Shown here: piece by piece, positions 3,272-27,865 of the stretch
How the letters are laid out: each line of letters starts with the position of its first letter
Numbering within the stretch: the first letter of the stretch is position 1
Source: Guillardia theta CCMP2712
Taxonomy: Eukaryota > Protista > Cryptophyta
NCBI RefSeq assembly: GCF_000315625.1
Contig: NW_005434619.1
Coordinates: forward strand, 351,357 to 415,356
Direction: 5' to 3'
Length of the DNA stretch: 64,000 bases
Position numbers and translations under genes: made by a program
Notes under the pieces: model-generated
The model's database searches: none
Told to the model about the DNA's origin: nothing
Seen by the model: the letters and a program-made list of their open reading frames with translations, nothing else

Positions 3272-5143
3272 TCACAGATCCCGCACATTGAACGAGCTGT
3301 CGTCCATCTTATCTAGAGCTATCCTAACTGGCTCCAACCCTGGCTCGTTGAGAATACTCGCAAGCATGTGACTTGGATTTGATTTCTCCTTCTCCCCTGA
3401 CGCTGTCTCCTTCACCAGCTCTCCACTGAGTACAAACTTGAGAAGGGAAGGCGAGAAACCAGCTAGCAGGGTCACTCCGGGCGTGTCTGACTTCACTGGA
3501 AATCCGTCTGAGGATGAATTGACATTCCAGAAGATGATGTGGGGCGGCTCTATCGGCCGGCCATACAGGCGCATTCCCTCCTGCCTGAAGAGCTGCTTCA
3601 TGTTGTCGTGAGCTGTCTTGGGGTCCTGTCCCGCCGCTTCATCGAACTGCATGTCTGAGATGATGAGCAAGTTGGGGATCTCGTCGGGCTGGAGACCCTT
3701 GCTGCGGACCAGCTCCAGGATGAGTTTCATGGCCTTGTACACATCCGTGTTGCCACCCCAGTCTGCTCGCATCAGTGACTTCACTTTGTCGACTATGTTG
3801 GTGCAGCCTTGCAGCTTGTGCCATGAAGGCCTCTCAGAGAAGGTCAGGACGAGGTCCCTATACGCTGGGTGGGATACTTCGGAGCAGAGGATTCCAAGGG
3901 CGATAGAGACGAACATCGGGGTGCCGCTCATGGATCCAGACACGTCTGACATTGCGATCGTTTTCCCGAGATCCACAGGTCGTTTAGAATCCGATTCCAA
4001 TGCCTTTGCCTCGAGCACATCTTGGACGATGGAGAGCAGCTCGGATTTCTGTTCGGTGCTTTCATTCCCTGCCTTGACTGCAAGATGGTCGTCAAGGTCT
4101 TGGGACATCGCTGAGAGCTCTGCTTTCCTGTTTGAGATCATCTCCTCGACATTTTCCCGCACTTTTTCCCATAGAACCCCACAGATTTCTCGGACAGCCC
4201 CTGAGCAACGCTTCATGCCAAGGATCTTCTGTACAATCTCGTGAGGGAAAAGCTGCTTCCCATTCAGGGTCTTCTCGCGTGTCGCCTCAAGAAACGTTTC
4301 ACGGCACTTCATCCGACTCTCTTCCGAGGAACGCATTTCTTCACCTTTGACCTCCTCATTGAGGAAAGCTTTCATGTACCTCTGCACCGCCAGGGAAGGG
4401 ACAGTGTTGAATTGTATGGTATCCCACTGGTTCGAGCTCATCTTCACCTCGGGGACATCCAAGGCTCTCCTCAGCTCGGACAACATCCTGCGGTATTTGC
4501 TCTTGACGTACCGGCCGGCTCTGACGGGATCTTTTGTCGATGTCAGGACATCACCATAGAGCTTCTGACAGATGCTTCGGGTCGCTCCGAGCTCGCGTCC
4601 AAACGCATGACCCTCGGAGGGTGCGAACTTTGCGCACAGAGAGAGTTTGGGTACCAGCCCTTGCTCTTGAGCTTCCGTTAGCTCTCTGTAATCGGTTTTG
4701 AGCTGATCAGCAAACAAAGTCCAGACTCTGTCTGCGATAACATCATAGTCATCCTGCTGCATACCTGCACCTTTGCAATTTTGCAACAGGAGCAACAGGT
4801 CCTTCCAATATCCAAAGCTGGGAACAATGACGAGAAGCTCGAGCACCACTGAGGGGAAATATTTGTACAGAACTCGCATCATGATCAAGAAAAGTTTGCG
4901 CTCTCCCTTTCCTCCCCTGCACCAACGAGTCTGGAACGCCAGCACGAAAAGCGATTTGACGGTTTGGACGTCGCCGTGCTGTTGAGCCTCCACTAGCACG
5001 TCACGTACTGAGTCTTTGATCTGCTCCTCTTGCAAGCCTCGCACGAGCTTGGAGAGGAGCGCGAGGAGAGGTTCACCAAACGAAGCGGGGTCTAGTTCCC
5101 AATGACCATTGCACCCCTTGGTGTAGGCCACGGTGGAAGCCAT
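3272..5143 (-). CDS. DUF2828-family protein with C-terminal vWA domain (intronless, 623 aa)
   Basis: Motifs AFQTRWCRGGKGER, GYWKDLL, SLCAKFAPSE, VPEVKMS..WDTIQF..VPS, LFPHEIV, MIDAS-like DVSGSM, WGGNTD, IISDMQFD and PHIIFWNV are typical of DUF2828. ATG at 5141-5143. Confidence 0.85.
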   Translation of the reverse strand: MASTVAYTKGCNGHWELDPASFGEPLLALLSKLVRGLQEEQIKDSVRDVLVEAQQHGDVQTVKSLFVLAFQTRWCRGGKGERKLFLIMMRVLYKYFPSVVLELLVIVPSFGYWKDLLLLLQNCKGAGMQQDDYDVIADRVWTLFADQLKTDYRELTEAQEQGLVPKLSLCAKFAPSEGHAFGRELGATRSICQKLYGDVLTSTKDPVRAGRYVKSKYRRMLSELRRALDVPEVKMSSNQWDTIQFNTVPSLAVQRYMKAFLNEEVKGEEMRSSEESRMKCRETFLEATREKTLNGKQLFPHEIVQKILGMKRCSGAVREICGVLWEKVRENVEEMISNRKAELSAMSQDLDDHLAVKAGNESTEQKSELLSIVQDVLEAKALESDSKRPVDLGKTIAMSDVSGSMSGTPMFVSIALGILCSEVSHPAYRDLVLTFSERPSWHKLQGCTNIVDKVKSLMRADWGGNTDVYKAMKLILELVRSKGLQPDEIPNLLIISDMQFDEAAGQDPKTAHDNMKQLFRQEGMRLYGRPIEPPHIIFWNVNSSSDGFPVKSDTPGVTLLAGFSPSLLKFVLSGELVKETASGEKEKSNPSHMLASILNEPGLEPVRIALDKMDDSSFNVRDL

Positions 5144-5313
5144 GATCAGGAGGGCGGAGGACGGGCGGCTAGGTGAAGGGACGGAGGGCAAGCTCGAGAG
5201 AGAGGAGGGGAGAGGAGGGCGGGGGGATGGGAGGTCGAGAAGGAGGAGGTGTGAGGGAGGGAGGACGAGCAGGAGGAGGAGCCTCGGAGGAGAGCGGTAA
5301 GGTTTTATAGTCA

Positions 5314-5345
5314 TTTACTCAAAGTTAAGTTAAAATTAGTACGAG
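5314..5345 (+). repeat. Dispersed 33-bp intergenic element, copy 1
   Basis: TTTACTCAAAGTTAAGTTAAAATTAGTACGAG, near-identical to the copies at 20780, 20858, 27487 and 27833. Confidence 0.9.
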
Positions 5346-5834
5346 TCGGTTGGATTTTTCCTTGTTTGTGGTCGACAGCCTGTTGCAGTGGTAGGATTGC
5401 GATGCGACCCCCCGGACGGGCACCGGGGCCGGGCCGGGGAGTCTCCGAGTCGGATCCGGAGTCCCGGGCCGGCAGCCGGCCCGGACTCCGAGGGTTCAGG
5501 CGGGCCCGGGGCCAGCGCCGACCGTGTCCTGCACTGAGTCACGGCGGGTACCTGAATTTAAAATTTTATAGTTGAATTCACGTCATTTTTCTTTTCAAAT
5601 CTAGTAACGAGATTTCAATTCTAACACCGGATATAGAAAAACTGAGCCTTCCATGACAGCCAGGGGAAGCAGCAGGACGGAGGCGACGCGAGCGATGGCG
5701 AAGGAGTGAATATGAAGCATGCAGGTGGATGATAACAAGAGATGAATGCCGTTCAAGGCCATCGGAGTCCTCCAAGGTTGGTAGCAGCCCTCGTTCTCGG
5801 ATGCTAGGAGGAGGTGGGCCACGTTGAAGAAGCG

Positions 5835-8800
5835 ATGCTAAGCTCTTCATTCGATGCCGGCCATACGCCCATGAGGCGCGCAGATTTCGGTGACTATGAC
5901 GATGATGATAACAGACGTAGGGACAAGCTCAGAGAGCAGGAGAGCGGTGTCCTCTTCGCTGGGATGGAGGGAGACATGGTGCAAGATGATCGCAAGGCTG
6001 AGTCGAGGTGGGCCCGAGAGAAGAAGAGGATGGAGGCGGATTTGAGGAGGAAAGAGGCGGAGATCTCTCATCTAGAGCGGAGATTAAAGATGTCCAAGGA
6101 GAACATGCGGACGGTCTTGTCTGAGAACGAAAGCAGCCAGGACACGATGAAGGTTGAAATCAACGAGCTAAAGCAAATGTTAGCCAGAAAAGACGGAGAG
6201 ATTCTTGCTCTGCAGCACAAGTCAACAATAGCCCATCCAAGGCATCATGATCATCATCCAGGCTCGCACCACGAGGATTCAAGAAACTCTGACGCCAGCG
6301 ATGCTGCGAGAATTATGAAGGAGCTGCGGGAGGCTGCGGATCAGTTTTCCAAGGGAGCTGTCGGTTCAGACGCAGACGTGAAAGAGATCTTGCTGAAAGT
6401 CCTTCAAGACTCAGCGCAGAACAGGAAAGAGATTGAAAGACTGCAAGAGGAGAAACGTGAGCTTGAGGTGAAGGTTCATATTTTACGTGGTCCCCGGTGA
6501 CCTCGTATTTGACAGGCTGCCGTTGAAGAGATGAGGACGGTTTGCATCGACAAGATTGTCTCAAGGGCGGTAGAGGATGAAGAGCGTTCAAGTCAGAAGG
6601 AGAGACAGGATGCGGTTGCCTCGAACGAGAGTGAGAATGAGATCAGAGTTCAAGAGCTGCGCACGAGGGTTAAAGAGTTGAACGAGGAGATTCATGAGCG
6701 CGACCGTCAGATCTCAGAGGCGATGAGGAGAGTGGAAGAGGAGAAAGCAAGAGCAGACAAAGCAGGGCAGAAGATCGTCAAGAAGATGACTGCTCAGACG
6801 GAAGAGCACCTGCGGACCATCGCAGCGCAGGCCCGTCAGATCAATCAGATCGAATCCAACCTGAGGAAGGCCATTGAGAAGTACGAAGAAGCCAAGGAGC
6901 TTCAAACCTCGTGGTCTACCTCTGCAGAGTTGTGCACAAGAGATTTCGAAGCTCAAATGGCAAGGTTGGAAAAGACTCTCGATGATTCACACAAGTTCTC
7001 GTTGGAGCTTCTTGCCACTGTGGATCAACTGAACGCGCAGAATCGACAATTGGAGAACGCCTTGATGCAGGAAAGAAATGACGGCAAGCAGGCGGACGAT
7101 GTTCTCGAAGTTCTGATCTCTCAGCTTGCTGACTTGGAGTCGGACTTGTCATGCTTTCGGTCCTGCTGGAGTGGAGATTTTCCATCAAGCGAGGGGGGGG
7201 ACACTCAAAACCTCCTCCCCAACTTTGATGAGCTCAAGACGCGTCAAGGAATCGAGTTGTTTGAGAGCCTGAAAATCTTCTCTGGGACATTTGAGTTAGG
7301 GGGAACTTTGACGCGGGATGGTCAGTACGTCTCAACGCTCGAGGACAAGCTTCAAAAGGCGTACGAGAAGATTCATTGCCTCGAAGAGGAAGTGAGTTCT
7401 TAATCCTACCCAGCTGTTGTCAGGAGATCTTACTTGCGATGTGTTCCCCTTCAGGTGAAAGAGCTCAACGAGGACTGTCAGAAGATGCATGATTCATGGC
7501 AGAAGGAGTGTGAGGAGAGGATCAAACAAGTCGAAAACCTCACTGCCAAGAATGCTCGACAAGCGGACACTCTGTCACACCTCACTTCTGAGATCGCCAT
7601 CCTGAAGGCTTCTTGTGCCTGCCCACCTTCTCCCGGAAGGTGTCGCATCCTCCCTCCACCTCTCCCCCTCTCCCTCCCCCACCTCAATCCCACCTATCTT
7701 CCTGTGTCTCTCTCCCCTCCTCTCCGTGCCTCTTCCTCTTCCTCTACCTTTACCTCTTCCTCTTCCTCTGCTTCTACCCCTCTAGCAAGTGTCTGACGTC
7801 ATCGAGCAGCTTGAATGGATCGCTTGCCGTCCCCTCGTCGCCAGGGAAGCCTCAGACGCAGTACTCGAAGCGAGAGGAGGGAAACGCCATCGACGTGTCT
7901 CACGACGCAGACACCACCGAGGAGGATCTGTCGGAGGCCTGGAGCGTGTTGAGCTCCACGGGCGGGGCTCAGCGCTCGCAGGATTGGGAGCAGACCAACC
8001 CCGAGCAGCTGCAGGTGAACAAACTCAGGCAGGCGATCGACATGCTGCAGCGGCGCGTGCGCGACCAGGAGGCGAAGGCGAACAAGTTCCAGACTGAGAG
8101 CCAGCTGGAGCGATCGCGATCTGTGGCACAGAGAGCAGACATGCAGCGGCAGGTGATGCAGCAAGTGGACGAGCTGTCGCGGCAGCACAAGGTGGTTTCA
8201 GACCTCACCCAGGCTCTAGAGCAAATGCACCTCGAGCTGAAGGCCTCAAGGGAGCGAGAAGCGGAACTGACCACGAGGGTACAGCAGATGGAAGAGGAGG
8301 AGAAGCAGATCCACCGCGCGAGCAAGCAGAGCTGGACGAGCGAGGGATGCGAGTTCGAGAATTCGCACCTGAGGGCAGAGGTGGAAGACCTTCGGCTGTG
8401 CCTTCAAGCAGCTAAGGACAACACGTCACTAGTGAGGGAGGGGATGGCTCTGAAGCTTCTGCGGGTAAAGTGCTTCCTTGCCTCCCTTCCTCTCCTTCCA
8501 TTCTTGATGATGCTTCCATCGCTCTGATCCCTCACCTCCTTCCCTACTCATCTTCCTCCCCCAACTTCTTCCTCTCCCTCTCCTTTTCTCTTTCCCTCTC
8601 TCTCTCGCTCCCTTCTCCTCTTCCTCTTTGCTGCTCTCTTCTCCTCTCTTCTCCTCTCTTCTCCTCTCTCTTGTGCTCCTGCCCGATGACGCTGCCCATC
8701 GTTGTGCAGGTGGAGAGCAAGTTGAGAGACAAGGAGATCGAGTGCTTCCGGCTGCGGGAGCTCCTAGGCCTCTCCTCTTCCTCCTCGCCCGACCCACTGG

Positions 8801-11800
8801 AGGGAAGCGAGTCCCTGCGGGCCAAGTCAACCACAGACTTCCACGTGAACCCAGCCCAGGTGCTGCGAGAGTTTCTCTCCTCCCCTCGGGCTCCAGCAAG
8901 GAGCCAGAGGGAGCAGGAGAAGGAGGAAGGGAAGAGTGGAGGGCAGGACGGGGAGAGGGTTAAGGATCTAGAGGAAGAGCTTCAGAGGAAGGAGGAGGCG
9001 GCTAGAGAGTTGGTCAAGAGCCTCAAGGAGGAGCATGACCTGGTCAAACGGGAGCTACAAGGAAGGATCAATGAGCTGGAGGTGGGTTTCTTTCCGTCGA
9101 GCAGCCTGAAGGTGGACATGGGGTGAACGTTTGCGCAGGAGGAGCTGAAGCAGAAGACTGTGTTTGTGGAATCGCCGATCAGACCTGTAAGATGTTTTCT
9201 TCCGATCCCCCTTGTCGTTGGCATCACGAATCCTCACGGTTGGTCAAACTTGCAGAAATCCAGCTATCCCTCAGCAGAGCTGAATGGAGAAGCAGGGTTT
9301 TCCAACGACTCCTCACATGGCTCCAGTAAGATCTGACGCGGAGAGGGTTTGTGGATGACGTATACTTGTCAATAGAAACTTTCGGTAGCGAGAGAGCTCT
9401 GCATGCAAAGGAGCAGGTTGGCTGTCATGGAGTCTGGTTGTTAGACCTGACAAGAGGCTTCATAGGAGAAGATGAAACATTGGTTGAAGATTGCAGAGGT
9501 GTTTGTTGCTGCCCGTGGTTGCTGTTGTGTTCTGAGCCCTGCGGTGTGAAAACAGAAGAAGGGGCCAGTAGCCGACGATTCTGTTGACACTGAGATGGTG
9601 AAGAAGCTTGTCATCCAGCTGCTGGTTGTTGACGTTGATCCTGATTGAGGGGTTGTTGAGCTGAAGGTTGGCAGGCCGAGACTGAAGAGCTTCAGAGCTT
9701 CGTTGAGCTGCACAGTGACGTCATCATCGCCGATGACGGCAAGCTGTCCGATGACGAGGCAACAAGGTCTCGTTGCTCACAGGGTGCTGTGTTTGAGGAC
9801 TAATGGTGGGAGCAGCGAGCAAGGCAAGCTGCTGCCGTCCGGTGCCGAGGACCGAAGCGCGGAGTTGGCGGAGCTGCAACAAGCGATCAGCAGGAAAGAG
9901 CAGATGGTGGCATGGCTGCGCTCCAAGGTAAGGGAGGGATGATGAGGGAGGAGTTTGGGAGCTGACTGACGATGGTAGATCATGAGATTCGCAGACCTGC
10001 TGAAGGACTTGAGGGATGACAGCATAACGAGTCTGAGGCAGAAGGACAAGCTCATAGCCGAGCTGCAGCTGGAACTCACGAACGCCGCGGAGAAGGGACA
10101 GGACGAGCACGGTCACGTTGAGCTGCGGCAGGATGTCGCAAGGAAGGAGCTATGCTCTCAAGAGACGCAGACTGGGACCGTTGGAGTGGAAGAGAAACAG
10201 ACGGGGACAGGAGGGGAGGAGGAGGAGGACGTGAGGTTTTCGATCCTCAAGCCGGATGCTGTCGACAAGGACGCGACCATCTCTCAGCTCAACGATGAGA
10301 TCAAGAAACTTCGGTGACTGCTCTTGCCCTTCCTCCTCCTCCTCCTCCTCCTCCTCCTCCTCCTCCTCCTCCTCCTCCTCCTCCTCCTCCTCCTCCTCCT
10401 CCTCCTCCTCCTCCTCCTCCTCCTCCTCCTCCTCCTCCTCCTCCTTCCTCAGGACTCTGACCGCTTTTGTGAAACCTCAGCGAGCTGGTTCTGTCGCAGA
10501 GCGATCAGATTTCTGTCTTGCAAGACGAGGTGGGCTTGTTGTCTTTCGTTGTCAAGAGCTCATGGCATGTCAAGGCCCTCGCGTACCTGAAGAAGAACGC
10601 GTCTGTCGTCAAGAGCGGTCCCCTCACGCTCTGTTAAGACTCAGCGGTTGATGGTGTGGCCTTGTAGACGTGTCGTCAAGGCTGCAGGTGGAGGAAGCGT
10701 GCTCGCGGCAGGTGGACAAGCTGGTGCAAGAGATTGCTGGTAAAGCGCGTCAAGTGAGATGGTCGACCGTTGAGAGTTTGCGGCAGCTGCTGGTCGGGAG
10801 CTGAGGGAAGTCAGCGTTGAGGTGAGAGCCTCTGACAGGAAGCAGCGGCATGGCTGAGGGAGAGGCAGGTGGAGATGGGGCTGGAGCACATGAGGGCGAC
10901 GAGCGAAGAGGTGGAGGGACTGGGAATGAGGCAGGAGTGACGAGAATGGTCAGGATGAGGAGAGTTTGCTGCAGGAACGGCGGGCAAGGGACGCGCTAGA
11001 GGCGGGTGAGCTCGCCATCGACCTGCTGTGGTTGTCGCTGACGTGCTGCGTTGCCTTGCAGAGCTGGGGGTGCTGAGGGAGCGCGTGCAACGATATGAGG
11101 AAGAGCGGAAGGACGAGAGGGAGAAGGCGGGGGGAGAGGAGAAACGCGAGAAGAGAGAGTCGTACTTGAGCCTGAGCAACATGACAATGCCGGTGGAGGA
11201 GAAAACGCAAATGATCATCGAGCTGAAGGCCAAGGTGAGGAGGAGCAGGGGCAGGAGGAAGGAAGGAGGAGAGCGAAGGGAGGAGAGCGGGAGAGCGAGG
11301 GGAGGAGAGCGAAAGGGAGGAGGTTGAGAAGATCGGGAAGGAGTAGGGGAGGGAGGGGCATCAGTGGGAGGAGGCGAAGAGTGGGAGGGAGGAGGAAGAG
11401 TTGCTGGTCGTCTGCTGACATGCCAGCAGATCTCCCAGCTGTACAAGGAGCTGAAGGAAGGGGAGGAGAACATGCTGCTGCTCACCAAGAAGTACGACAT
11501 GATGAAGGTAGGGAGACAAGGACAAGGGCAGGAAGGGATCAGGAGGGGGAGTAGGAGGGGGAGGAGGAAGAGGAGGAAGCGGAATAGACGAGGACGATAG
11601 AAGCATGGGGGAGGGAGCAGCGAGGAGAGAGGAGGCAGGAGGAGGAGAGGGAGAGGGCACATAGTCTGCGCATTTTGATCATCATCACAGAGGAACATGA
11701 AGACGTACAAGCTGGACGTGGCGGGCAAGATCGGGCAGCTCCGTGAGCAGCTGCAGGACAAGGTTCCTTGCTGGAGGGCTGGGCTGCCTCGTCTGATCGC

Positions 11801-12811
11801 GGAGCAGGAGGAGGAACTGCGGGAGCTGGAGAAGAAGAGTGGAAAGACTTCGCACAAGAACTGAGAGAGGAGGAGGAGGANNNNNNNNNNNNNNNNNNNN
11901 NNNNNNNNNNNNNNNNNNNNNNNNNNNNNNNNNNNNNNNNNNNNNNNNNNNNNNNNNNNNNNNNNNNNNNNNNNNNNNNNNNNNNNNNNNNNNNNNNNNN
12001 NNNNNNNNNNNNNNNNNNNNNNNNNNNNNNNNNNNNNNNNNNNNNNNNNNNNNNNNNNNNNNNNNNNNNNNNNNNNNNNNNNNNNNNNNNNNNNNNNNNN
12101 NNNNNNNNNNNNNNNNNNNNNNNNNNNNNNNNNNNNNNNNNNNNNNNNNNNNNNNNNNNNNNNNNNNNNNNNNNNNNNNNNNNNNNNNNNNNNNNNNNNN
12201 NNNNNNNNNNNNNNNNNNNNNNNNNNNNNNNNNNNNNNNNNNNNNNNNNNNNNNNNNNNNNNNNNNNNNNNNNNNNNNNNNNNNNNNNNNNNNNNNNNNN
12301 NNNNNNNNNNNNNNNNNNNNNNNNNNNNNNNNNNNNNNNNNNNNNNNNNNNNNNNNNNNNNNNNNNNNNNNNNNNNNNNNNNNNNNNNNNNNNNNNNNNN
12401 NNNNNNNNNNNTTATAATTAAGATAATAAAATCAAACTTAATTCGAAGTTCATCTCCGGACCACGACAACCCCACAATCTCGGCGTCAAAGAACACCAAC
12501 TCGCAGACCCCCCACCCTCTTCGATGGGTTTCCCCACACCGTTTTCTTCCTTCACTTTCATCTTTCAGCCACTCCCCCTCCCCGGGGGGGGGGGGGGCCA
12601 CCACCCCTTCACCTCCACCTCCGCCTCCTCCTCCTCCTCCTCCTCCTCCCCTCCCCCCATCCTTCCCCCACCTCTCTCTTCCTCCCCTTCCCTTCTTCCT
12701 TGCTTCTCCTCCCTCCTCGCTTTGCTCACTTGCTCTCGCAGCTCACGCGAGGGGCTTCTCTTCTGGAGGCACAAGCTGCCGAGCGACTTGACAAGGAGCC
12801 TTCCGGCATGA
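5835..12811 (+). CDS. Large multi-exon coiled-coil protein (hypothetical); spans an assembly gap, 3' end uncertain
   Basis: Successive E/K/R/Q/L-rich heptad ORFs (5835-6470, 6531-7390, 7455-7610, ~7790-8465, ~8710-9080, ~9980-10315, ~11030-11235, ~11430-11870) separated by plausible introns. Confidence 0.6.
10331..10443 (+). repeat. (CCT)n microsatellite, intronic
   Basis: Uninterrupted trinucleotide run, representative of many such tracts in this window. Confidence 0.95.
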
Positions 12812-13249
12812 GGACGGAGAGAGCACCGGGAAGTAGCGAATGCAATGCGGGGAGGAGGAGGAGGAGGAGGAGGAGGAGGAGGCTACTGTGATGATGATGA
12901 GATGATGTATTGTTATGGACTGAGAGAGGATATGTACGAAAGTTGAAAGTGAAGGAAGAAAACAGCGTGAGGAAACTAATCGATGAGGATGGGAGCTTGA
13001 GAGATGCTGGACTTGACGACTGTCCTGCACTCGCTGGGGGAAGGAGGGAGGAAAGTCTTTGGGCTTCCAATCTTGTGACGCACTGCTGAGAGAAGTCAGA
13101 TTCATGGAAGGAATGAGAGAGGAGGAGCAAGAGCAGAAGCAGAGGTGATAGGAGGAGGAGGCACAGGAGGAGGAGAAATAGGGAGGAGGAGGAGGAGGAG
13201 GAGAAAAAGGAGGACGAGGAGGAGGAGGAGGAGGAGGAGGAGGAGAGTA

Positions 13250-18062
<4,813 letters not shown>

Positions 18063-18724
18063 TGCTGAGCTAGATAAAAGTTTGATTCGATTTTTGTGCG
18101 ATTAGCTCACTTATGACTGTTGTAAGGACTTGCAGTCACAAGAGCCGGCCAGCAAATTTTCACTTGATTGACATGGTGCAATTCATCGCGTGCAGCTTAC
18201 CAGAGTATTCTTGCTCTTGAAGCACTTCCTCTCTATCTACTACAATATCTTCTTCCTGCCTGCTACGCCATGACCTCCTGAGTTCTTCGCCGTGGTCTGC
18301 ATTCTCACGACACACCACGCTTGACTGCCATGGCGCCACAGCAGCAAGCAAGAGGGGCCAGCAGTTCAATGCTAGGGTACGGTAGTATAAATTATGGGGT
18401 AGTACAAATTGCTCTGAATATTTCGAGTGATTTATTTGCTATTATTACTTATAAATTCAAATACTTTTGACAAATTTCAACAAGTTTTCATAAAATTGAA
18501 CATACGTGAAATATTGGGGGTAGGGGTATCGAAGGGGTAGGGTAATCATCGGAAGGGTGGGAGGTAGGAGATGAACTGAGATGCTGCTGAGATGAACTCA
18601 TACAGCACCTATCTGAAAGGCCCGGTGGCGGTAGTGTCGGGTGCTCACCCTCAGCGGGGGGATGAGGGCGAGATACAGAGTGGTTGGAAGGGGCGATGGC
18701 GGGAGAAAGATAAGGGAAGCAGGC

Positions 18725-19968
18725 ATGGCGAGTGTGCATATCCTTGGTCACATCTATGGCGCGGTAAGTGAGACGATGTTGAGGTCCATGGCTCCATCCC
18801 TCGTCGGGCCATGTCCTCTCACCTGTTGTGTCGAAGGATGCTCCCTCTCACTCGTTGCAACAGAGAGGAGTTGGGTCGATTTGGACCAATTATCTGCTGA
18901 GAGCGGTAGGAGAAATGATTGCATGATGGCTCGAAACAGACCACTGACCTGATGAATCTGTTGTGTAGGGTGGAGGACAGGCTCTGTGGTGCCGATGGGA
19001 GATCGTGGTTGAGGACAACCTTCGATGGACCAAAGAGCATGGAACGATCTATGAAGATGGAGAGATGTTGAGAGACCAACATGGAAACGCGGTAGCTCTG
19101 GAAGACCATTTTGTCCGACATGCCCTTTTGCATGCTGATTCTTGTCAGGCTCTGAGCGAAGTCGGACAAACACAATGCTGTGAGTGCTCCCCTGGGGGAC
19201 TGGCTGTCTGGTCCCATCCTGTCGACGTGAAGTACCGAACGACATCTCTGACGGGTATGAATACTCCGCAAGCTCCTGCCTCATCGTAGAGGTTACATGA
19301 GAATATCTGAAACTCGTTGCTGCCAGGATGGCCATCGATGCTCTTCGAGGTATGGTCACAGGTAGATCTGTTCTTACATGGTTTCAGCTGGTTAAGGTTG
19401 CATGGTGACGAACAGGACGGCGGAGGAAGGAACGAGATAGTGGGATATGCTGTATGCCACATACCTGCAGCTCCTGGATTCCACGAGATAGAGGTCCGAT
19501 ACTGGCTCTTGTTTCCACTGCACAGGCTCGGGGTGATATGTACTCAGGTTCCTATCTGGAGACCCTTGGCGAGTCAAGGAGAGCGGGGCTGGTGGAGGCG
19601 GATGTAAAAGAACTGGCTGCCAGAATGCCTCTCATATCTACTTCAGGAGCAAATCGTTGAGCGGGTGGTTCCTGGGGATCTGGCCACGTCTCAACGACGA
19701 TGGTTCCTCTGCGACGCGTACCTTCACGACGGCAGCGAAGAATGTACTGTACAATCCTATCAACTTCACAAAGGTTTTGCTCTCGATCGTCAACTTAGTT
19801 CTTTCATGTGACGAGCGGGGCTGGCAGGAGCGGTCGGCAATCGAAACCGTAGGGACAGGCAGCCTGATGGTCAAGCTTTCTGTCATCACCAGAGGGTTCG
19901 ACAAGTACGGTCCTGGGACCAACCTCGCTGTGGAGGAAGCTTGGAGAAAGCAGCAGGGAGAGTTGTAG
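18725..19968 (+). CDS. B9D2: Ciliary transition-zone B9-domain protein (B9D2/MKSR2-like), many small exons
   Basis: MASVHILGHI, GQTQC, VWSHPVDVKY.T.SL.G|WPSMLFEVW, GRNEIVGYAVCHIPAAPG.HEI, IWRP, WFLG..PRL and T.GTGSLMVKLSVITRGFDKYG match B9D2. Confidence 0.85.
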
Positions 19969-20245
19969 AACGGCGTGGAACAGTATCGGAGCCGCAAGTT
20001 TCAAGTTTCGAAAGTTCACTGAGCCTCACGTCGCGTCACGGCGTGATGGTGACTCCGAGGGAGCTGATCGGACCACGGAGTCGGATTTCTGAGTCGGGCA
20101 GCCTGAGGATCCTCAGGCTAAGTCCGTGGTTCAAGTATTAAAAATGTTTCTTATGATCACCGTCAAGTCTGCGATTGGAAAATGACTCGCCGTTTGGCCA
20201 GTGCGACAGTGTCAGGGTCAAGCCTCCTCGACTATCCTGATTGTC

Positions 20246-20278
20246 CTCGTACTGATTTTTCACTTAACTTTGAGGAAA
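20246..20278 (-). repeat. Dispersed 33-bp element, copy 2 (reverse orientation)
   Basis: CTCGTACTGATTTTTCACTTAACTTTGAGGAAA is the reverse complement of the consensus with 2 mismatches. Confidence 0.9.
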
Positions 20279-20574
20279 ATGACTCTAAACCTCTTCATCA
20301 TCACCATCATGATCTCATGCATACATACATTCAATACTTGTTCAAAGGAATGATTGAACAATAACACATAGCAACAATCAATGAGTATATGCATGGAAAA
20401 GACGCAGAAGCCGATACAACTGGCAAAGCGTCCATAACGCCACCATCAGTGCGCCACACGTGACACTTAGAAATTTTTTCAAGTTTTTGAATTAAGGAAT
20501 TAAGTAAATCTTTACTCAAAAACCTAAGATATACCTATGTTCCAGGAGCTTCCTCCTATAGATAATTGTGAGTC

Positions 20575-20614
20575 CTCGTACTTCTAGTACTGATTTTTAA
20601 TTTAACTCTGAGAA
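20575..20614 (-). repeat. Dispersed 33-bp element, copy 3 (reverse, degenerate, 9-bp insertion)
   Basis: CTCGTAC[TTCTAGTAC]TGATTTTTAATTTAACTCTGAGAA. Confidence 0.8.
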
Positions 20615-20779
20615 TCCCTTCTACGGGGGCCCACTGTTCTGAATTGCAAGTGAACGGGCTGCGGCAGTGCCATTGATTGGGCCCGGCCCGGCCCGGGGGG
20701 GGGGCGGCGGGGGGGCCGCCCGGTACCAGTCACTGGCCCGGGTTAGTACTCGTACGCGGCACGTTCACTGGCATGTAAC

Positions 20780-20812
20780 TTTACTCAAAGTTAAGTTAAA
20801 AATCAGTACGAG
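20780..20812 (+). repeat. Dispersed 33-bp element, copy 4
   Basis: TTTACTCAAAGTTAAGTTAAAAATCAGTACGAG (consensus). Confidence 0.95.
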
Positions 20813-20857
20813 GTATCTAGTACATCGGCCCGACCGGTCATGACGGTCTGTGATGCT

Positions 20858-20890
20858 TTTACTCAAAGTTAAGTTAAAGATCAGTACGAG
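20858..20890 (+). repeat. Dispersed 33-bp element, copy 5
   Basis: TTTACTCAAAGTTAAGTTAAAGATCAGTACGAG, 1 mismatch, 45 bp after copy 4. Confidence 0.95.
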
Positions 20891-21728
20891 TGATGCCTGT
20901 GATGCGTTGAGACACAACTGAGAAAAAAAACACTAAAAATGCTAAAAATGAAGAGGCGAGTGACGACACTGTCAAGCATGACCCTGAGGGGGTGGCCTTT
21001 ATTTCATAGTCGGAGACATAGTAAATATTGCATGTAGGGTACCTCTCCTTGAGATCTAAGCCTTGACTTCTTACTACACCTCACTCCGAAAGCTTCGTCA
21101 CTTTTAACACCTATACCTCTGATTGGGTACCCCCTCTTATCCCTGATTGTACCCCTACCTTGCAGTGCTATCCTGACCTCCAATGGTACCCCTACCCTCT
21201 CCATGAAGAATGCAATCTCGAGACCCTTCTTGGCCTATGGATCTGATAACCCCTACCCCTCCAATTAAACCTTTTGGCAGCTATAAACCACCCGTACTCA
21301 TTGAATCTTTTCTGGACCCCCACCTCCCTGTAAACTCAAAGAACGCACATCCCCTCGTCTGAAAACCTCTCCGCGCCATGTGCTGCCGTTTCGCTTAGGT
21401 CTTTGCGCACTCGTTGCTCTCCCACTTGTTCTCGTCCCCTCCTCCTCTCCTCCCTCCTCCTCTCGCTTCAAGCTTCCACTCACTCCCCTCCTCCTTCTCA
21501 CCCATTCACGCTTCGAGCCAGGATCCGCCCGGGTGCTGGCCAGTCCCTACACCGCTAGATAGCCCTTTTACAGGATAGACTTATCTTCGTATTGGAAAGC
21601 TGCGTGAACGTTGGTTGAGCGAACCAAGAGCACTGGTCGTCAGAAGACGAACAGATACGCAGATCAGAACAAGCAGACGATTCAAATCATCTGCTTCTAT
21701 ATTGACAGGCACAAGTGTGGTAAACAAG

Positions 21729-22205
21729 ATGCTTGGCCCGAAGGTAGCCCGCGTCTTCCTCCGCAAGCGGAGAGATGAGACGGGTGAAGGTCAGCAACCC
21801 TCCCAGCGAGAGGTTCTCATCACCAACGAGACCATCGAGTCTCTCCTCCACCTCCGTCAGACCGACGCCGCCAACCAGCTCGGCATCTCCCTCACGGCCC
21901 TCAAGAACGCCTGCAAGTACCTTGGCTTCGACAACTGGCCGACGGCGAGGAGCAACCTCGTAGCAACTCAGCCAACAGCCTCAGTTGCACTCCCGTCCGT
22001 CACCTCGCCGGCTCCGGCTCAGACTCGGAACCCTCGGAATCGGTTGGTAGCCGAAGGAGAGGCCGGGCGATCAGGGTTAGTGGGAAGCAGGAAGGCAGGA
22101 CGGGGAGAGAAGAGGCAGAGGCTCGCAGAGAGTATCCCAGCATTGAAAAGCCACGGGCTTGAGGAGCTGATGCTTGACGCGCTGGAGCATGTGGCAGATC
22201 TATGA
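21729..22205 (+). CDS. RWP-RK-like domain transcription factor (intronless)
   Basis: ITNETIESLLHLRQTDAANQLGISLTALKNACKYLGFDNWP follows the RWP-RK pattern (L.L..AA..LG...T.LK..CR.LGI.RWP) with a divergent NWP. Confidence 0.8.
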   Translation: MLGPKVARVFLRKRRDETGEGQQPSQREVLITNETIESLLHLRQTDAANQLGISLTALKNACKYLGFDNWPTARSNLVATQPTASVALPSVTSPAPAQTRNPRNRLVAEGEAGRSGLVGSRKAGRGEKRQRLAESIPALKSHGLEELMLDALEHVADL

Positions 22206-22879
22206 GGGGTGGGGCTTGGCCCTCAGGTGATCAAACGTGCTGCAGTGCAGTTACTGTTGGTTGTTTTGCTGTCAAAAACAATACCTCCTTCAGGTTTGAC
22301 TGACCTGCGGAGGGAGCTTGTTGGCGGTCTGGTGGAAATCGGCCATGTGTACTATAGAGTTCGTTCCTAGTGCTTACATCGTGATTTGATGTTTTCAAAT
22401 AGAACGCTGTTTGTGACTTTGACTGTGATTTCTCGCAGTTTTTCCAGTAGATAAATCTATTTCACACGCTTGCCTCCACCCCTTTCGTCGTGCCATTCAA
22501 AACAACATTGCAGCTTTCTATGGTCGCATACCTTTGACATTGAATCGAGAGAATTGAATCGAGCAAATTATGGACGCCATGTGTGTCCCTGATCCTAAGT
22601 TTCCTCTTTTTTCTGCAACAGAGAATCTGTCAAAGTAACCTCTTCAAATTCTACGAAGGCGAATCTGTGAACAGTTATGAGCTGGTGGACGGGAGCAAGG
22701 GAAGGGAGGAGAGAAGAGGGGGAGTGTATAGGAAGGGGGTAGAAGCAAACGACAAGACTTTTATGTTCACTTGCACTTGTCCACTCAATTTCGCTCTCAA
22801 GACAGTAGCTCAAAGTTTCTTGAAGAACTCCTGCATCAAGGTTTCAGTCTCAAGACAGCAGCACAAGGATCCTGCTCCT

Positions 22880-25455
22880 ACCGGCCTGTTGCTCTTACTT
22901 GGGAACTGCTTGCTGTCATCCCCCTACAAAATAGTCAGTGCCTCCCAGCTCCTCTTCTCCTACAAACCGCCAGCGGGAGGACGGAACGGGCAAGGGTGAT
23001 CCATCCGTTGGGTCCTGAGAGGAACCCTGGGCCCCCGAGTCAGCTACCTGCCCGCCCTCCTCCTCCTCCTCCTCCTCCTCCTCTCCTCCTCCTCCTCCTC
23101 CTCCTCCTCCTCCTCTCTCCTCCTCCTCCTCCTCTCCTCCTCCTTCTCCTCTCCTCCTCCTCCTCCTCCTCCTCCTCCCCCTCACCCTTGAGTGCGAGCG
23201 AGCCCCGAACTCTCCATGACGTGTTTTCCCACACGCCGAGGCCAAAGATCTGGAGAGGAGGGTCAGCAGCTCCAGGGCACCCGGCAGGTCCTACCAGCCT
23301 CTCGTAGGGCTCCACCAGCCTGTGGGACAAGAAGCCTCCCCACTTGAGCAGCACAGCTTCAGTGAGGAATCGGAGAGCAGAAGGTGGAAGGGACGGGAGA
23401 GTGAAGGGGTGAGTGGAGGAAAGGAGAGTGAGGAAGAGGATGAGGATGAAGGGGGATGGGCGAAGAGGAGAGACACAAGGGGGAGGACGGGAGGGAGGGA
23501 GAGAAGAGAAGAGAGCAACTAGCAGGAAAGAAGATATGCAAGAAAAGATTGCCAAGGAAAAGATCTTGTGCAACCGCGGCCAGGCACGGGAGGGTGAGGA
23601 GGGAAGGGGCGGATGAGGGGACACCTGCTGGAAGGGAAGCACGAAGAAGGCTCCAAAGAACTCTCTCAGCTCCCCAAGGCCTGCCCAGCAGGATGAGCAA
23701 GCAAGAGCAGCCCCCTCCTCCCTCCTTCACCTATCGACTCAAGGTATTCCCCCCCGAAGTTAGCAAAGTCGCGCTGCCTCCTCGTCTTGTCGGTCCACAG
23801 CTGCTCCCACACGTGATGCGCCGCCGCCTCGGCATCCTGCAGCTCCGGTCAGGCCCTGCCCGTCCCATTCCTTCCCACAGAGCCTCTTCCCCCTGTCTCC
23901 GTGCTACCTTCCTCCATCTCCCTCTCCCTCTCTTCTCTTCTCTTCTCTTCCCCCTTCTTGCCGCTTTCTCCCACTGTTCTATTCGCTCTCCTCCCTTTGC
24001 TCTACCTCCTTCCTCTCATCTACACCGCTCCCTTCTCTCACACACCTCAGGGTTCTTCTTGAGAGCCTCCTCGATGGACTTGGCAGTGTCGGACGCCAAC
24101 GTCAACGTCCTTGACAGCATGTACCTATTCCCATCATCAATTCCTCTCCTCGTCCTCTCCCCCTGGGGGGACTTCGCAAGGGCCAACCCTGTGGCAGGAT
24201 GCACCAGACCGGCAGAACCTCCGAAACCAACAACTCTTTGCGGGGAAACGGGCCTGTCAGAACGTGTCAAGGTCAACAGACGCGTCTCAGTGTCGTACAT
24301 GGCTCCTCCCATTGGGATGTAGCAGAACTCCTCCTCGTGGACCTTGACAACTTTGGTCCCCCAGAGGTCAAGACGCCTGCAGGCCAGCGTTAGCAGGAAG
24401 AGGGGAGGGAGGGAGGGAGGGAGGGAGGGTGAGGAGGAGGAGGAGAGCGGCTCACTTGTACAATCTCCTCTTCAGGTCGTCGAAGGGCACAGCGGGGTTG
24501 GCGATGAGAGAAGTTTCTGCGCTCGGGACGTCAACTTCCACCAAAGTCTCCGCTCCCCTTCACCTTCAAAGAACACCCTCCCAGCATTCGTCGGCATGAC
24601 ATAGATGAAGGTCGGAACAGCCTCGGACTCCTGCCAGGCCTCTCACTCCCTCTCGCGTGCCCCCTCGCCTCCCACACTCACGGCCAACTCCCCTGAGGAG
24701 CTCTGCATGTGGACATCACGATAATCCATGAGCAGCATCTCATCTAGCGGGAAGGGATACGTCCCCGGCTCGATGTCGCACTCGATCCCGTACGCCGCCT
24801 GCACCCCTGGCTCGCGTCCCTGCTCGTACTCGACAAACGCCTTCGAGTGTCCCGTGCAGTCAACAACCAGCCGGGTCTTGAGCTCACTGCCGTCGTCCAG
24901 CTTCACCGAGGTCATGCTCTTCTCGTGCAACAGCGACTTCACCGCCACCTTCTCCATCCTTACCCCGTACTTGCTGCACCTGGACAGGAAGTGCTCCTTG
25001 ATCTTCTTGCGGTCAATCCTCCCGTAAGGACGGTTCAGCACGATCTTCTCGTCCCCTGAGCTTCCTCCCATGAAGACTGTCGCCGTCGGCCAGATCGTCA
25101 TGAGGCATTCCTTCAGGCCCAGCGGCTCAACTTCATCAACCCACACTCCATAGTTGGGGATCCACCCGACGTCTAGGTTGGGATCGACGCAGGAAACCTT
25201 CATGCCCTTCATCCCCAGCTCTGCCGTCAGCGCCAACCCTGCAGGCCCTGAGCCCACGACCACGACATCCATAACTTGCTCGTTGCTGCTCATCCTCAAA
25301 CCACCCAGTCGCGGTCCCCTGCTGACAACGGAGCCGGTGGAGGCCGAGCATACCTTGCCCTGCTGGCGGTTGAGAGAAGGGAGGATGCCTCCTCTGAGAA
25401 GAAAGGGACATGCGGCGGGCATCAGAGCCAACGACAGAAGAACTTGCTTGATCAT
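22880..25455 (-). CDS. LCYB: Lycopene beta-cyclase (CrtL/LCYB family), plastid-targeted, multi-exon; 3' end approximate
   Basis: Signal peptide plus Phe (MIKQVLLSLALMPAACPF), FAD-binding DVVVVGSGPAGL, WIPNYGVWVDE, RPYGRIDR, PGVQAAYGI, MLLMDYR, PTFIYVMP, EETSL, IPMGG, GGSAGLVHPATG, WGGFLSHRL. Confidence 0.9.
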
Positions 25456-26199
25456 CGTGCGGTTCTAGGACGGGAGAGGATCTTTGCTCAGAGTAACGTT
25501 AGGCGAGAGATCGAGTAAGAGCGGCAAGAGGAAGAGGCAGAGGAAGGAGAGGAGAAGGGATGAAGGGGAGGGGGAGGGAGGGAGAGCGGGAACGGAGGAG
25601 GGAGGGAGGAGGGGGAGATCGCCTCCACTTGCGCGACCCCCTTTACATGTCAAGTCCTAAAGGGGGTGGGGTGAAAATTTCGTAATACCCCCTATTTTTA
25701 TATGAAAATGATCCATAATTTGTGTGGTAGGGTACTTGTTTGTGGGTGGTGGGGTAAAGGGGGTAGTAGGAACGGCATCGTATCATGTCAGACTGCAAAT
25801 CTATTTGTGCAGACAAGACATGGTGGAAGGAGGAGAAGTTATGATGATAACAAGTTAGGAAAGAATCTCAAGAAGGAGGTTGAAGGGTAAGGAGGAGGAG
25901 GAGGAGGAGGAGGAGGAACGGGAGCAAGAGAAGATTGAATAACAGACAAGAAGGAGGAGGACGGGAAGGAGTTTGAAGAAGGAAGAAAGGGAAAAGGGAT
26001 CTCAAGATGAAAACCGAATGTGCATCAACTATTAAGTCGAGATGAATATAAACGAAGAAGATGAGTTCACGAGCAAGCAGACTCCCCGTGAGAACAAGGT
26101 TGAGAACTGGAAACCTTCTGATGAAGAACTGTCTTCAACGTTCGAAAATGGATGGATGTCGTTGTAGAGAAAAGGATGTCATGGAATCTATCTTGAGAG

Positions 26200-26944
26200 G
26201 AAAGAATACATTGAGAGGAGAACATCTCACACTAGTGTCATGCTTATCCTCGAAATTTCCCAACTCGGCAGATCAGCTCCTAGCGATGGCTCGAACTCGT
26301 CACTGGCGGAGGCATGCGGGCGACCTGCAAAAACTCTCCATCCCCGCAGAAAGTTTCGACACAGCTGGAACTGACGTCTCCTTCGAACGATGGACTCGCC
26401 AACGCAAAGGCTGTTGCGTCTGCGGAGAAGGTTGATCCAGCTTCGGCACACCTGGTGGAGAAGCAACCGCCTCCTAGAGAATGCAGACATTCTCAAAACT
26501 TTGTCGTAGAACGAGTCTTGCAGATGTTTCCCCTTGGATATCAAGTCCAGATGTTGCAAGTCGTTGTGCTCCCGTTGCGATTCCAACGCGCTCTGCACTT
26601 TCTTGCCTCTCTCCTCCGTTGCCGTCAAACACATCTGAGATGGCCGTCAGCAAACCAAGACCTCTAGAGTGTTCCAAGATCAACTGATGAACCTGTAACT
26701 TCTCGATGTCTTGCTGGGTAGCTGTGGTTTCCTTGACGATAAGATCCAACACATCCGAAGTTTGAGTGCAAAGATCCCACATCTCACTGTGGATGCTCTC
26801 ACTCTCTTTGTTGATCCTGCTTATCTGATGGGAGGCGTGTTTCCTAGCTGAGTTCCATTCATCCAGCAAAGTTGTCATCTGTTCAATCCTTCGCATGTTC
26901 GCTGATGCATCGTTCCTTGGCGTGCTCTTTGTACTGTTCGACAT
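26200..26944 (-). CDS. Hypothetical coiled-coil protein (boundaries uncertain)
   Basis: A 156-aa ATG ORF with heptad character and an adjoining ORF (26227-26634). No family recognised. Confidence 0.4.
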
Positions 26945-27486
26945 GTCGGCGTAGAGCGTTGATGCGATGATTTATGGGAACTGCTTCTTTCTCCGTCGTC
27001 CTTCGCTCCCGTCAAGAGAGCCCGTCTGCAAGAGCTACATCAGCATGCAAGTGACATCTGTCTATCCCGTATAAACTCACTCTCGATCTGAAGTCTGGCA
27101 TCACGACATGCTCGCAGGGAGTTTGTTGGGAGGATGCAACAATAATCATTATGCAGGGCGGCAGATTAAGACAACATCAGGATGGAGAGAGGGGCGCTGG
27201 TTGCGAGAATTACAAGAGGTGACAAATTGGACTCTGTGAAGAGAAACGGGAGGAATAGGTGAGGGGAGGTGCTGCTGGGTTGACAACGGAAGAAATTTTT
27301 GAATTCCATCGCATCGGGAGTGAAAGCATCTGCCGGGCCAGAGGAGAGGAAGGCTATGATGACTTCATGCTACATGCTGCGACTTGACTGAGTGACTCAT
27401 CTTCCCTCTCGCACTTGGCAGAGCCCGGGCCACATCAAGGTCTCCTCACCATGTTTGTGCAGTTGCATATCCCCTGATCGGCGCTG

Positions 27487-27519
27487 TTTACTCAAAGTTA
27501 AGTTAAAAATCAGTACGAG
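27487..27519 (+). repeat. Dispersed 33-bp element, copy 6
   Basis: Perfect consensus. Confidence 0.95.
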
Positions 27520-27832
27520 GACGCTAGTGAGGGACTGATTTAACCGGGATCGGATAGGTCCGGAGGCTTAAACCTGGGCCCCGGCGGCGGGGCGGGCCGG
27601 GCCCGGGGGACCGAGTCAGTCCGAGCCTCAGTCACGCTCCTACCGGGCCGGGCGGCCCCCGGGCCCGGGCGGGGCGGTGGCGGGAGTCTCGACTCGAAGC
27701 CAAAGCACTGACGGTCGCGCCGGGCGGCCGGGCCGCCGCCTGATCGGATGAGGAGTCCGGCCCGGGCTGTACACGGGCCGTCCGTGACGGTAGTCACTCA
27801 GCGGCTCGTGGTACTGGGCCTCAGTACAGTTG

Positions 27833-27865
27833 TTTACTCAAAGTTAAGTTAAAAATCAGTACGAG
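27833..27865 (+). repeat. Dispersed 33-bp element, copy 7
   Basis: Perfect consensus. It forms a direct repeat with copy 6 around a 313-bp GC-rich segment. Confidence 0.95.

Follow-up and report, generated by a model that had tools for sequence, protein, structure and literature searches.

The 64,000-nucleotide stretch of Guillardia theta CCMP2712 DNA analysed here (the window; contig NW_005434619.1, positions 351,357 to 415,356) contains several copies of a 33-bp motif, TTTACTCAAAGTTAAGTTAAAAATCAGTACGAG. We identify this motif, with a probability of about 0.9, as the 3' end of a young non-LTR (lacking long terminal repeats) retrotransposon of the long interspersed nuclear element (LINE) type, the window copies being short, dead-on-arrival insertions of its tail. 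Searched as a query with up to three mismatches, the 33-mer was found at 20246(-), 20780(+), 20858(+), 27487(+) and 27833(+), each with 0-2 mismatches, where dinucleotide shuffles gave an expectation of 0.00 matches. Two degenerate copies, at 5314(+) and 20575(-), are also real according to the sequence itself, BLAST and repeat output. The seven copies listed in the initial annotation, three of them identical, thus all exist. They had been described as intergenic and indeed no open reading frame (ORF) of at least 90 aa overlaps the window copies, except one mechanical ORF that ends at 5314. No tRNA or Rfam RNA genes were found near them. An assembly gap of 531 N at 11881-12411 lies 6.5 kb and 7.8 kb from the nearest copy on either side and is irrelevant to the finding because every copy sits in contiguous sequence.

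The motif is not confined to the window. In the whole assembly (87.1 Mb, 669 contigs) we found 1002 matches with at most three mismatches, distributed over both strands (525 forward and 477 reverse), and none with the reversed control sequence. Exact matches to the 33-mer number 326, the terminal 20-mer occurs 1063 times and the terminal 14-mer 1592 times, against a single hit for its reversed control. When 30 loci were oriented on the motif, the flank on the TTTACTC side never aligned and the boundary was sharp in all 30. Beyond ...GTACGAG, on the other side, the sequence runs on as GACAATCAGGAGAGTCGAGG... over a distance that varies between loci. The earlier statement that the flanks do not align is therefore correct for the TTTACTC side, but the other side continues into a long repeat, as it does in the copy at 20186-20278. 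Read on the opposite strand, the copies share one sharp end, ...CTTTGAGTAAA-3', and are cut at variable points on the other side.

Extension of the longest copies led to near-identical (98-100%) long copies on several contigs with a common unit of 4352 bp. The reference full-length copy is L052:5149-9500 (equal to G000:C22:193146-197497), on the strand that ends in ...CTTTGAGTAAA-3'. It consists of a 5' untranslated region (UTR) of about 140 nt, one ORF of 1348 aa (L052:5289-9335) and a 3'UTR of 165 nt; the motif corresponds, in reverse complement, to the final 33 nt of this 3'UTR and of the element (...CTCGTACTGATTTTTAACTTAACTTTGAGTAAA-3'). The ORF is on the strand ending in GAGTAAA and is uninterrupted in 2 of 5 full-length copies, and the family may still be competent. 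Residues 592-735 of the ORF match the Pfam reverse transcriptase (RT) family RVT_1 with an E value of 6e-8. A repeat search of L052:5100-9560 detected no terminal direct or inverted repeats, that is, neither long terminal repeats (LTR) nor terminal inverted repeats (TIR); in the full-length copies the 5' end is unrelated to the 3' end, and the element has no poly(A) tail. Each of the features of a non-LTR retrotransposon that we looked for was found: an RT, the absence of LTR and TIR, a constant 3' end combined with variable 5' truncation, and target-site duplications (TSDs) of variable length. The mobile unit that had been proposed from the sharp conservation and unrelated flanks is therefore present as an RT-encoding master element. 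The motif is indeed a transposon terminus, although not that of a non-autonomous DNA transposon.

The window copies can be placed on this element as follows, with strands given for the element. The copy at 5314..5345 (-), as delimited by BLAST, corresponds to the final ~33 nt of the 3'UTR and differs by one deletion and one substitution; a GC-rich patch (5391-5551) lies 45 bp off its right end. The longest, at 20186..20278 (+), retains the last 93 nt with 94.6% identity and ends in GAGGAAA in place of GAGTAAA. A 12-nt direct repeat on its two sides, GGAAAATGACTC (20177-20188 and 20274-20285), overlaps both element ends and looks like a TSD with microhomology to the RNA 3' end. A degenerate truncated copy of ~38 nt at 20575..20612 (+) has GTACT duplicated internally and its terminal TAAA is absent. 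The copies at 20780..20813 (-) and 20858..20890 (-) comprise the last 34 and 33 nt, the former adjoining the GC-rich patch 20641-20761 and the latter enclosed by a 9-bp TSD, CTGTGATGC (20848-20856 and 20897-20905), with a 6-nt filler at its 5' junction. Further downstream, the last 36 nt at 27487..27522 (-) and the last 33 nt at 27833..27865 (-) bracket the GC-rich stretch 27520-27832, which adjoins the 5' junction of the first and the 3' end of the second. A possible ultra-short copy at 20511..20520 (-), consisting of the terminal 10-mer TTTACTCAAA only, is uncertain, with ~0.1 chance matches expected in the window. The mechanical ORF mentioned above (680 aa, window 3272-5314, minus strand) has its start precisely at the border of the 5314 copy. 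Low-complexity, CT-rich sequence makes up its first ~60 codons, so the true start of this gene probably lies further in.

For a broader view of the insertions we sampled 87 copies, picked by an exact match to the 33-mer. Their retained 3' length ranges from 33 to 231 nt with a median of ~43 nt, plus one copy of at least 1400 nt, a distribution that is biased because this sampling hides copies below 33 nt. Shorter remnants do exist: L011 and L018, among others, show nested tail fragments of 8-10 nt with flanking duplications of their own. Across the sampled copies the break points vary continuously (33, 34, 35 ... 65 nt) and share no common junction, and filler or microhomology is frequent at the 5' junctions. 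Flanking duplications, which the initial annotation had proposed to look for, exceed chance: the longest word shared by the two flanks reaches at least 7 in 16% of copies but in 3.4% of mismatched pairs, and it reaches at least 9 in 8 copies against ~0.1 expected. The TSDs present in this subset are 7-12 bp long, and those listed with at least 7 bp all have G as their first base. G also follows the element directly in 62% of copies, and TSD rates are similar in short and long copies. The copies are also strongly clustered: the 124 kb of sampled flanks contain 29 additional tails where 1.5-4.3 would be expected (7-19-fold), which suggests a regional insertion preference. Spacing and orientation of copy pairs are irregular. 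Given this clustering, the seemingly nested and inverted group at 20186-20890 and the direct pair 27487/27833 are best read as repeated independent hits. At one locus, L072 (G000:C10:1025343-1025458), the truncated 5' ends of two tails meet head-to-head, so that both 3' ends face outward, and a 4-bp duplication (GTCC) encloses the pair, as if reverse transcription had been primed from both strands of one staggered break.

The insertions also show a preference for their surroundings. Three patches in the window that contain several GGCCCGG words (5391-5551, 20641-20761 and 27551-27761) are located 19-77 bp from a copy, in line with the earlier description of a GC-rich patch beside the motif. 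We defined a patch as a 100-bp window of at least 74% GC within 150 bp of a copy, using a 5-bp scan. By this measure 36 of 86 sampled copies (~42%) have a patch, whereas the proportion is 4.6% for random window positions and 1/56 for sites 1 kb away in the same loci. With a 1-bp scan a patch is upstream of 18 copies and downstream of 23, again against 1/56 controls 1 kb off. Patches occur on either side of copies in either orientation and often at distance 0. The GC-rich stretch 27520-27832 has no other copy in the genome, and the 250-nt flanks of 86 copies, once element-derived sequence was masked, have no sequence common to them. The patches are therefore insertion neighbourhoods and not a part of the element or of a short interspersed nuclear element (SINE); the one at 27551..27761 (unstranded, GGCCCGG-type, single-copy in the genome) is an insertion-prone neighbourhood of this kind outside the element. 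Part of the enrichment may reflect a restriction of insertions to intergenic DNA. Compared with the window average, GGCCCGG/CCGGGCC words are ~6-fold and CAGTGACT ~12-fold enriched in the insertion neighbourhoods, which seem to constitute a class of their own within the intergenic DNA of G. theta.

How could such short insertions arise? In the mechanism that we favour, a nuclease would nick the target beside a G and reverse transcription would be primed there from the 3' end of the RNA (target-primed reverse transcription). Since this reaction starts at the RNA 3' end, all copies would keep the same sharp 3' end, and the G-initial TSDs of variable length (7-12 bp) would mark staggered cuts. 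Microhomology to the ...GUAAA end may help in some cases, such as the 20186 copy. Synthesis of the cDNA would usually abort within a few dozen nt, where either reverse transcription or RNA integrity fails, and because of this early failure most of the 1600 or more insertions would comprise ten to a few hundred nt of the tail. The regional preference for GC-rich patches could come from the target preference of the nuclease or from open or fragile DNA.

The alternative that survives best concerns a sub-population of ultra-short tails, which could be cDNA patches made by the RT and captured, independently of an endonuclease, when spontaneous breaks are repaired in GC-rich palindromic patches that are fragile or prone to recombination. 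Such a process would sit well with the lack of a clear TSD in most copies, with the many that directly adjoin a GC-rich patch (distance 0), whichever the side, with the strong clustering and with the filler or microhomology at 5' junctions. Yet the TSDs that are seen all begin with G, and together with the G bias of the first flanking base this points to a nuclease with a cut-site preference; nor do TSD rates differ between short and long copies. We consider break repair unlikely as the origin of this sub-population, and some copies may have entered at pre-existing breaks by this minority route. A related and equally tentative idea, on which we would not lay much weight, is that the LINE, or its RT acting at breaks, specifically marks the GGCCCGG-type patches, possibly structured, break-prone or recombination-hotspot DNA, with an RT of low processivity owing to its unusual Y-A-D-N motif (see below). 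If this were correct the 1600 or more ultra-short tails would constitute a natural map of nick and break sites in the genome, and the low processivity would account for the extreme truncation.

LINEs and SINEs are known to share tails, and the 33-mer could have been the 3' tail module of a separate, non-autonomous SINE-like family that uses the RT of the LINE, the short copies then being SINE ends; many copies do stop near 33-45 nt. We find this very improbable, as the masked flanks of the 86 copies share nothing and reveal no body other than that of the LINE, the break points are continuous instead of falling at a common junction, and no second copy of the GC-rich stretch beside the 27487 insertion exists in the genome. 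Least probable of all is a protein-recognised dyad, a site-specific recombination site or the TIR of a DNA transposon or miniature inverted-repeat transposable element, which the intergenic position and local inverted pairs such as 20246(-) with 20780(+) might recall, but the motif is continuous with an RT-encoding element without TIR and is always its 3' end, the pairs are irregular in spacing and orientation on nearly balanced strands, the reported dyad symmetry (9 of 13 positions) is reached by 6% of composition-matched shuffles and is not significant, and there is no RNA structure. Indeed the last 60 nt of the tail RNA fold no better than shuffles (z +0.95), and the z of -1.32 for the 3'UTR is not significant. 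The proposals of a recombination site and of a binding site for a dimeric factor thus fall as explanations of origin; some copies may nevertheless have been secondarily co-opted as regulatory sites.

A spliced-leader gene was also considered, suggested by the reverse complement of the motif with its ...TTTGAG/GTAAA-like end, and was rejected, since the leader published for G. theta differs from it in sequence. That leader, CTCGGCGGCTGGTCAAG followed by GT, has 21 loci of its own in the genome, where Roy 2017 (PMC5619915) gave 20 copies.

The encoded protein places the element among known retrotransposons. An exhaustive HMMER search returned 712 relatives at E values of at most 1e-3. A word-based homologue search returned two near-identical matches only, and an ESM Atlas search generic RVT_1 clusters only. 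Compared with solved structures, a profile of 15 relatives matched R2 proteins best (9nl3 at 3.5e-10 and 9dou at 5.5e-10; 8gh6 at 4e-6), followed by L1 ORF2p at ~1e-5 and then retron and group II RTs at ~1e-4. Downstream of the RT the ORF contains CX2C (residue 1110), HX3C (1125), AHE (1139), GD (1183), LD (1202) and K (1230), and the CCHC, GD, D and K motifs are conserved in the relatives. This is reportedly the order of motifs that Yang, Malik and Eickbush described in 1999 for the R2 endonuclease, which we took as a lead and not as a test. On motif order, then, the GD...LD...K series (1183-1230) would resemble the restriction-like endonuclease of R2-group LINEs. No APE domain was detected in the protein, and no zinc-finger or Myb domain was detected at its N terminus, where Pfam at E values up to 1 gave only a chance-level DUF match for residues 1-590. 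Motif C reads [YFW]-x-D-N in 15/15 aligned relatives (24-43% identity) and aligns to the A-D-D of R2 proteins, so that, judging from this alignment, another residue stands in place of the second catalytic aspartate across the clade. A literature search on the YADN RT motif found nothing relevant.

Several observations weigh against an active, R2-like LINE as the source of the tails. Motif C of the element itself is Y-A-D-N (residues 694-697) and not Y-A-D-D, which is unusual for an active RT. The endonuclease assignment comes from motif order only: a C-terminal profile searched against the PDB matched no R2 chain, and the AlphaFold model of the C-terminal region, with a mean pLDDT (predicted local distance difference test) of 42, was too poor for a fold search. 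A clear TSD is found in a minority of copies only, and the length bias of the 33-mer sample noted above bears on how extreme the truncation appears. Finally, the RNA-like contigs over the ORF are antisense and spliced in all three runs and do not represent a sense mRNA.

These contigs came from three runs for which the label RNA was guessed, and as contigs they cannot show strand or ends directly. Between L052:5963 and 8939 they skip seven segments of 48-63 nt that read CT..AC in the sense of the element, equivalent to GT..AG introns on the antisense strand; one DNA run has none of the seven skips. Over 5963-7241 each RNA-like run has a single contig, which represents the antisense, spliced form; no long ORF was found in this form. 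The main assembled transcript of the family therefore looks antisense, multiply spliced and non-coding, and may bear on silencing.

Within the non-LTR class the element is most similar to the R2 group (R2, R4, CRE, NeSL, Hero). Like these it has a single ORF in which the RT precedes a C-terminal CCHC and GD/D/K series, it has neither an N-terminal APE domain nor a poly(A) tail, its copies are frequently truncated at the 5' end and its RT profile finds R2 proteins first among solved structures. The differences are also clear. R2, CRE and NeSL target one multicopy RNA gene, whereas the G. theta element is dispersed over 1600 or more sites whose flanks are unrelated and biased only at the first base, so that its specificity amounts to a weak bias for G at the cut site together with a regional preference for GC patches. 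In contrast to the R2 group it has no detected N-terminal zinc-finger or Myb domain, its motif C is YADN where R2 has ADD, and homology of its nuclease was not confirmed by hidden Markov model or fold. Because neither site-specific targeting nor an N-terminal DNA-binding domain was found and the nuclease is recognised from motifs only, we do not file the element in a named clade. Dead-on-arrival insertions of L1 have in common with our copies a constant 3' end, variable 5' truncation, TSDs of variable length and head-to-head or tail-to-tail pairs, but truncation in G. theta is far more extreme (a median of ~43 nt among copies bearing the 33-mer) and proceeds with neither poly(A) nor an APE nuclease. 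The TRE elements of Dictyostelium, which insert beside tRNA genes, offer a parallel, in that insertions there are likewise clustered and restricted to the intergenic DNA of a protist genome dense in genes; in G. theta, however, the landmark is a GC-rich GGCCCGG-type patch and not a tRNA gene.

A conspicuous conserved intergenic motif of a reference algal genome can thus be explained as transposon debris, which averts its mis-annotation as a regulatory or recombination signal, and searches for motifs or analyses of promoters in G. theta should first mask the tails of this family. Our search of the literature on G. theta non-LTR elements found nothing relevant. The family defined here is a young cryptophyte LINE family distinguished by extreme 5' truncation, insertion at GC patches and a conserved Y-A-D-N.

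Parts of the element also appear in public records. The gene model GUITHDRAFT_110080 (P0002) is 100% identical to part of the LINE ORF at 45% query coverage and also contains a stretch resembling NXPE4_C; the model is probably a chimera of transposon and host sequence. Metagenome runs from runoff, freshwater and lake water contain near-identical copies of the element (99% over 3.8 kb), as does an ENA metagenome contig (L097). G. theta is a marine alga, and these copies could possibly derive from a close relative or from culture carry-over.

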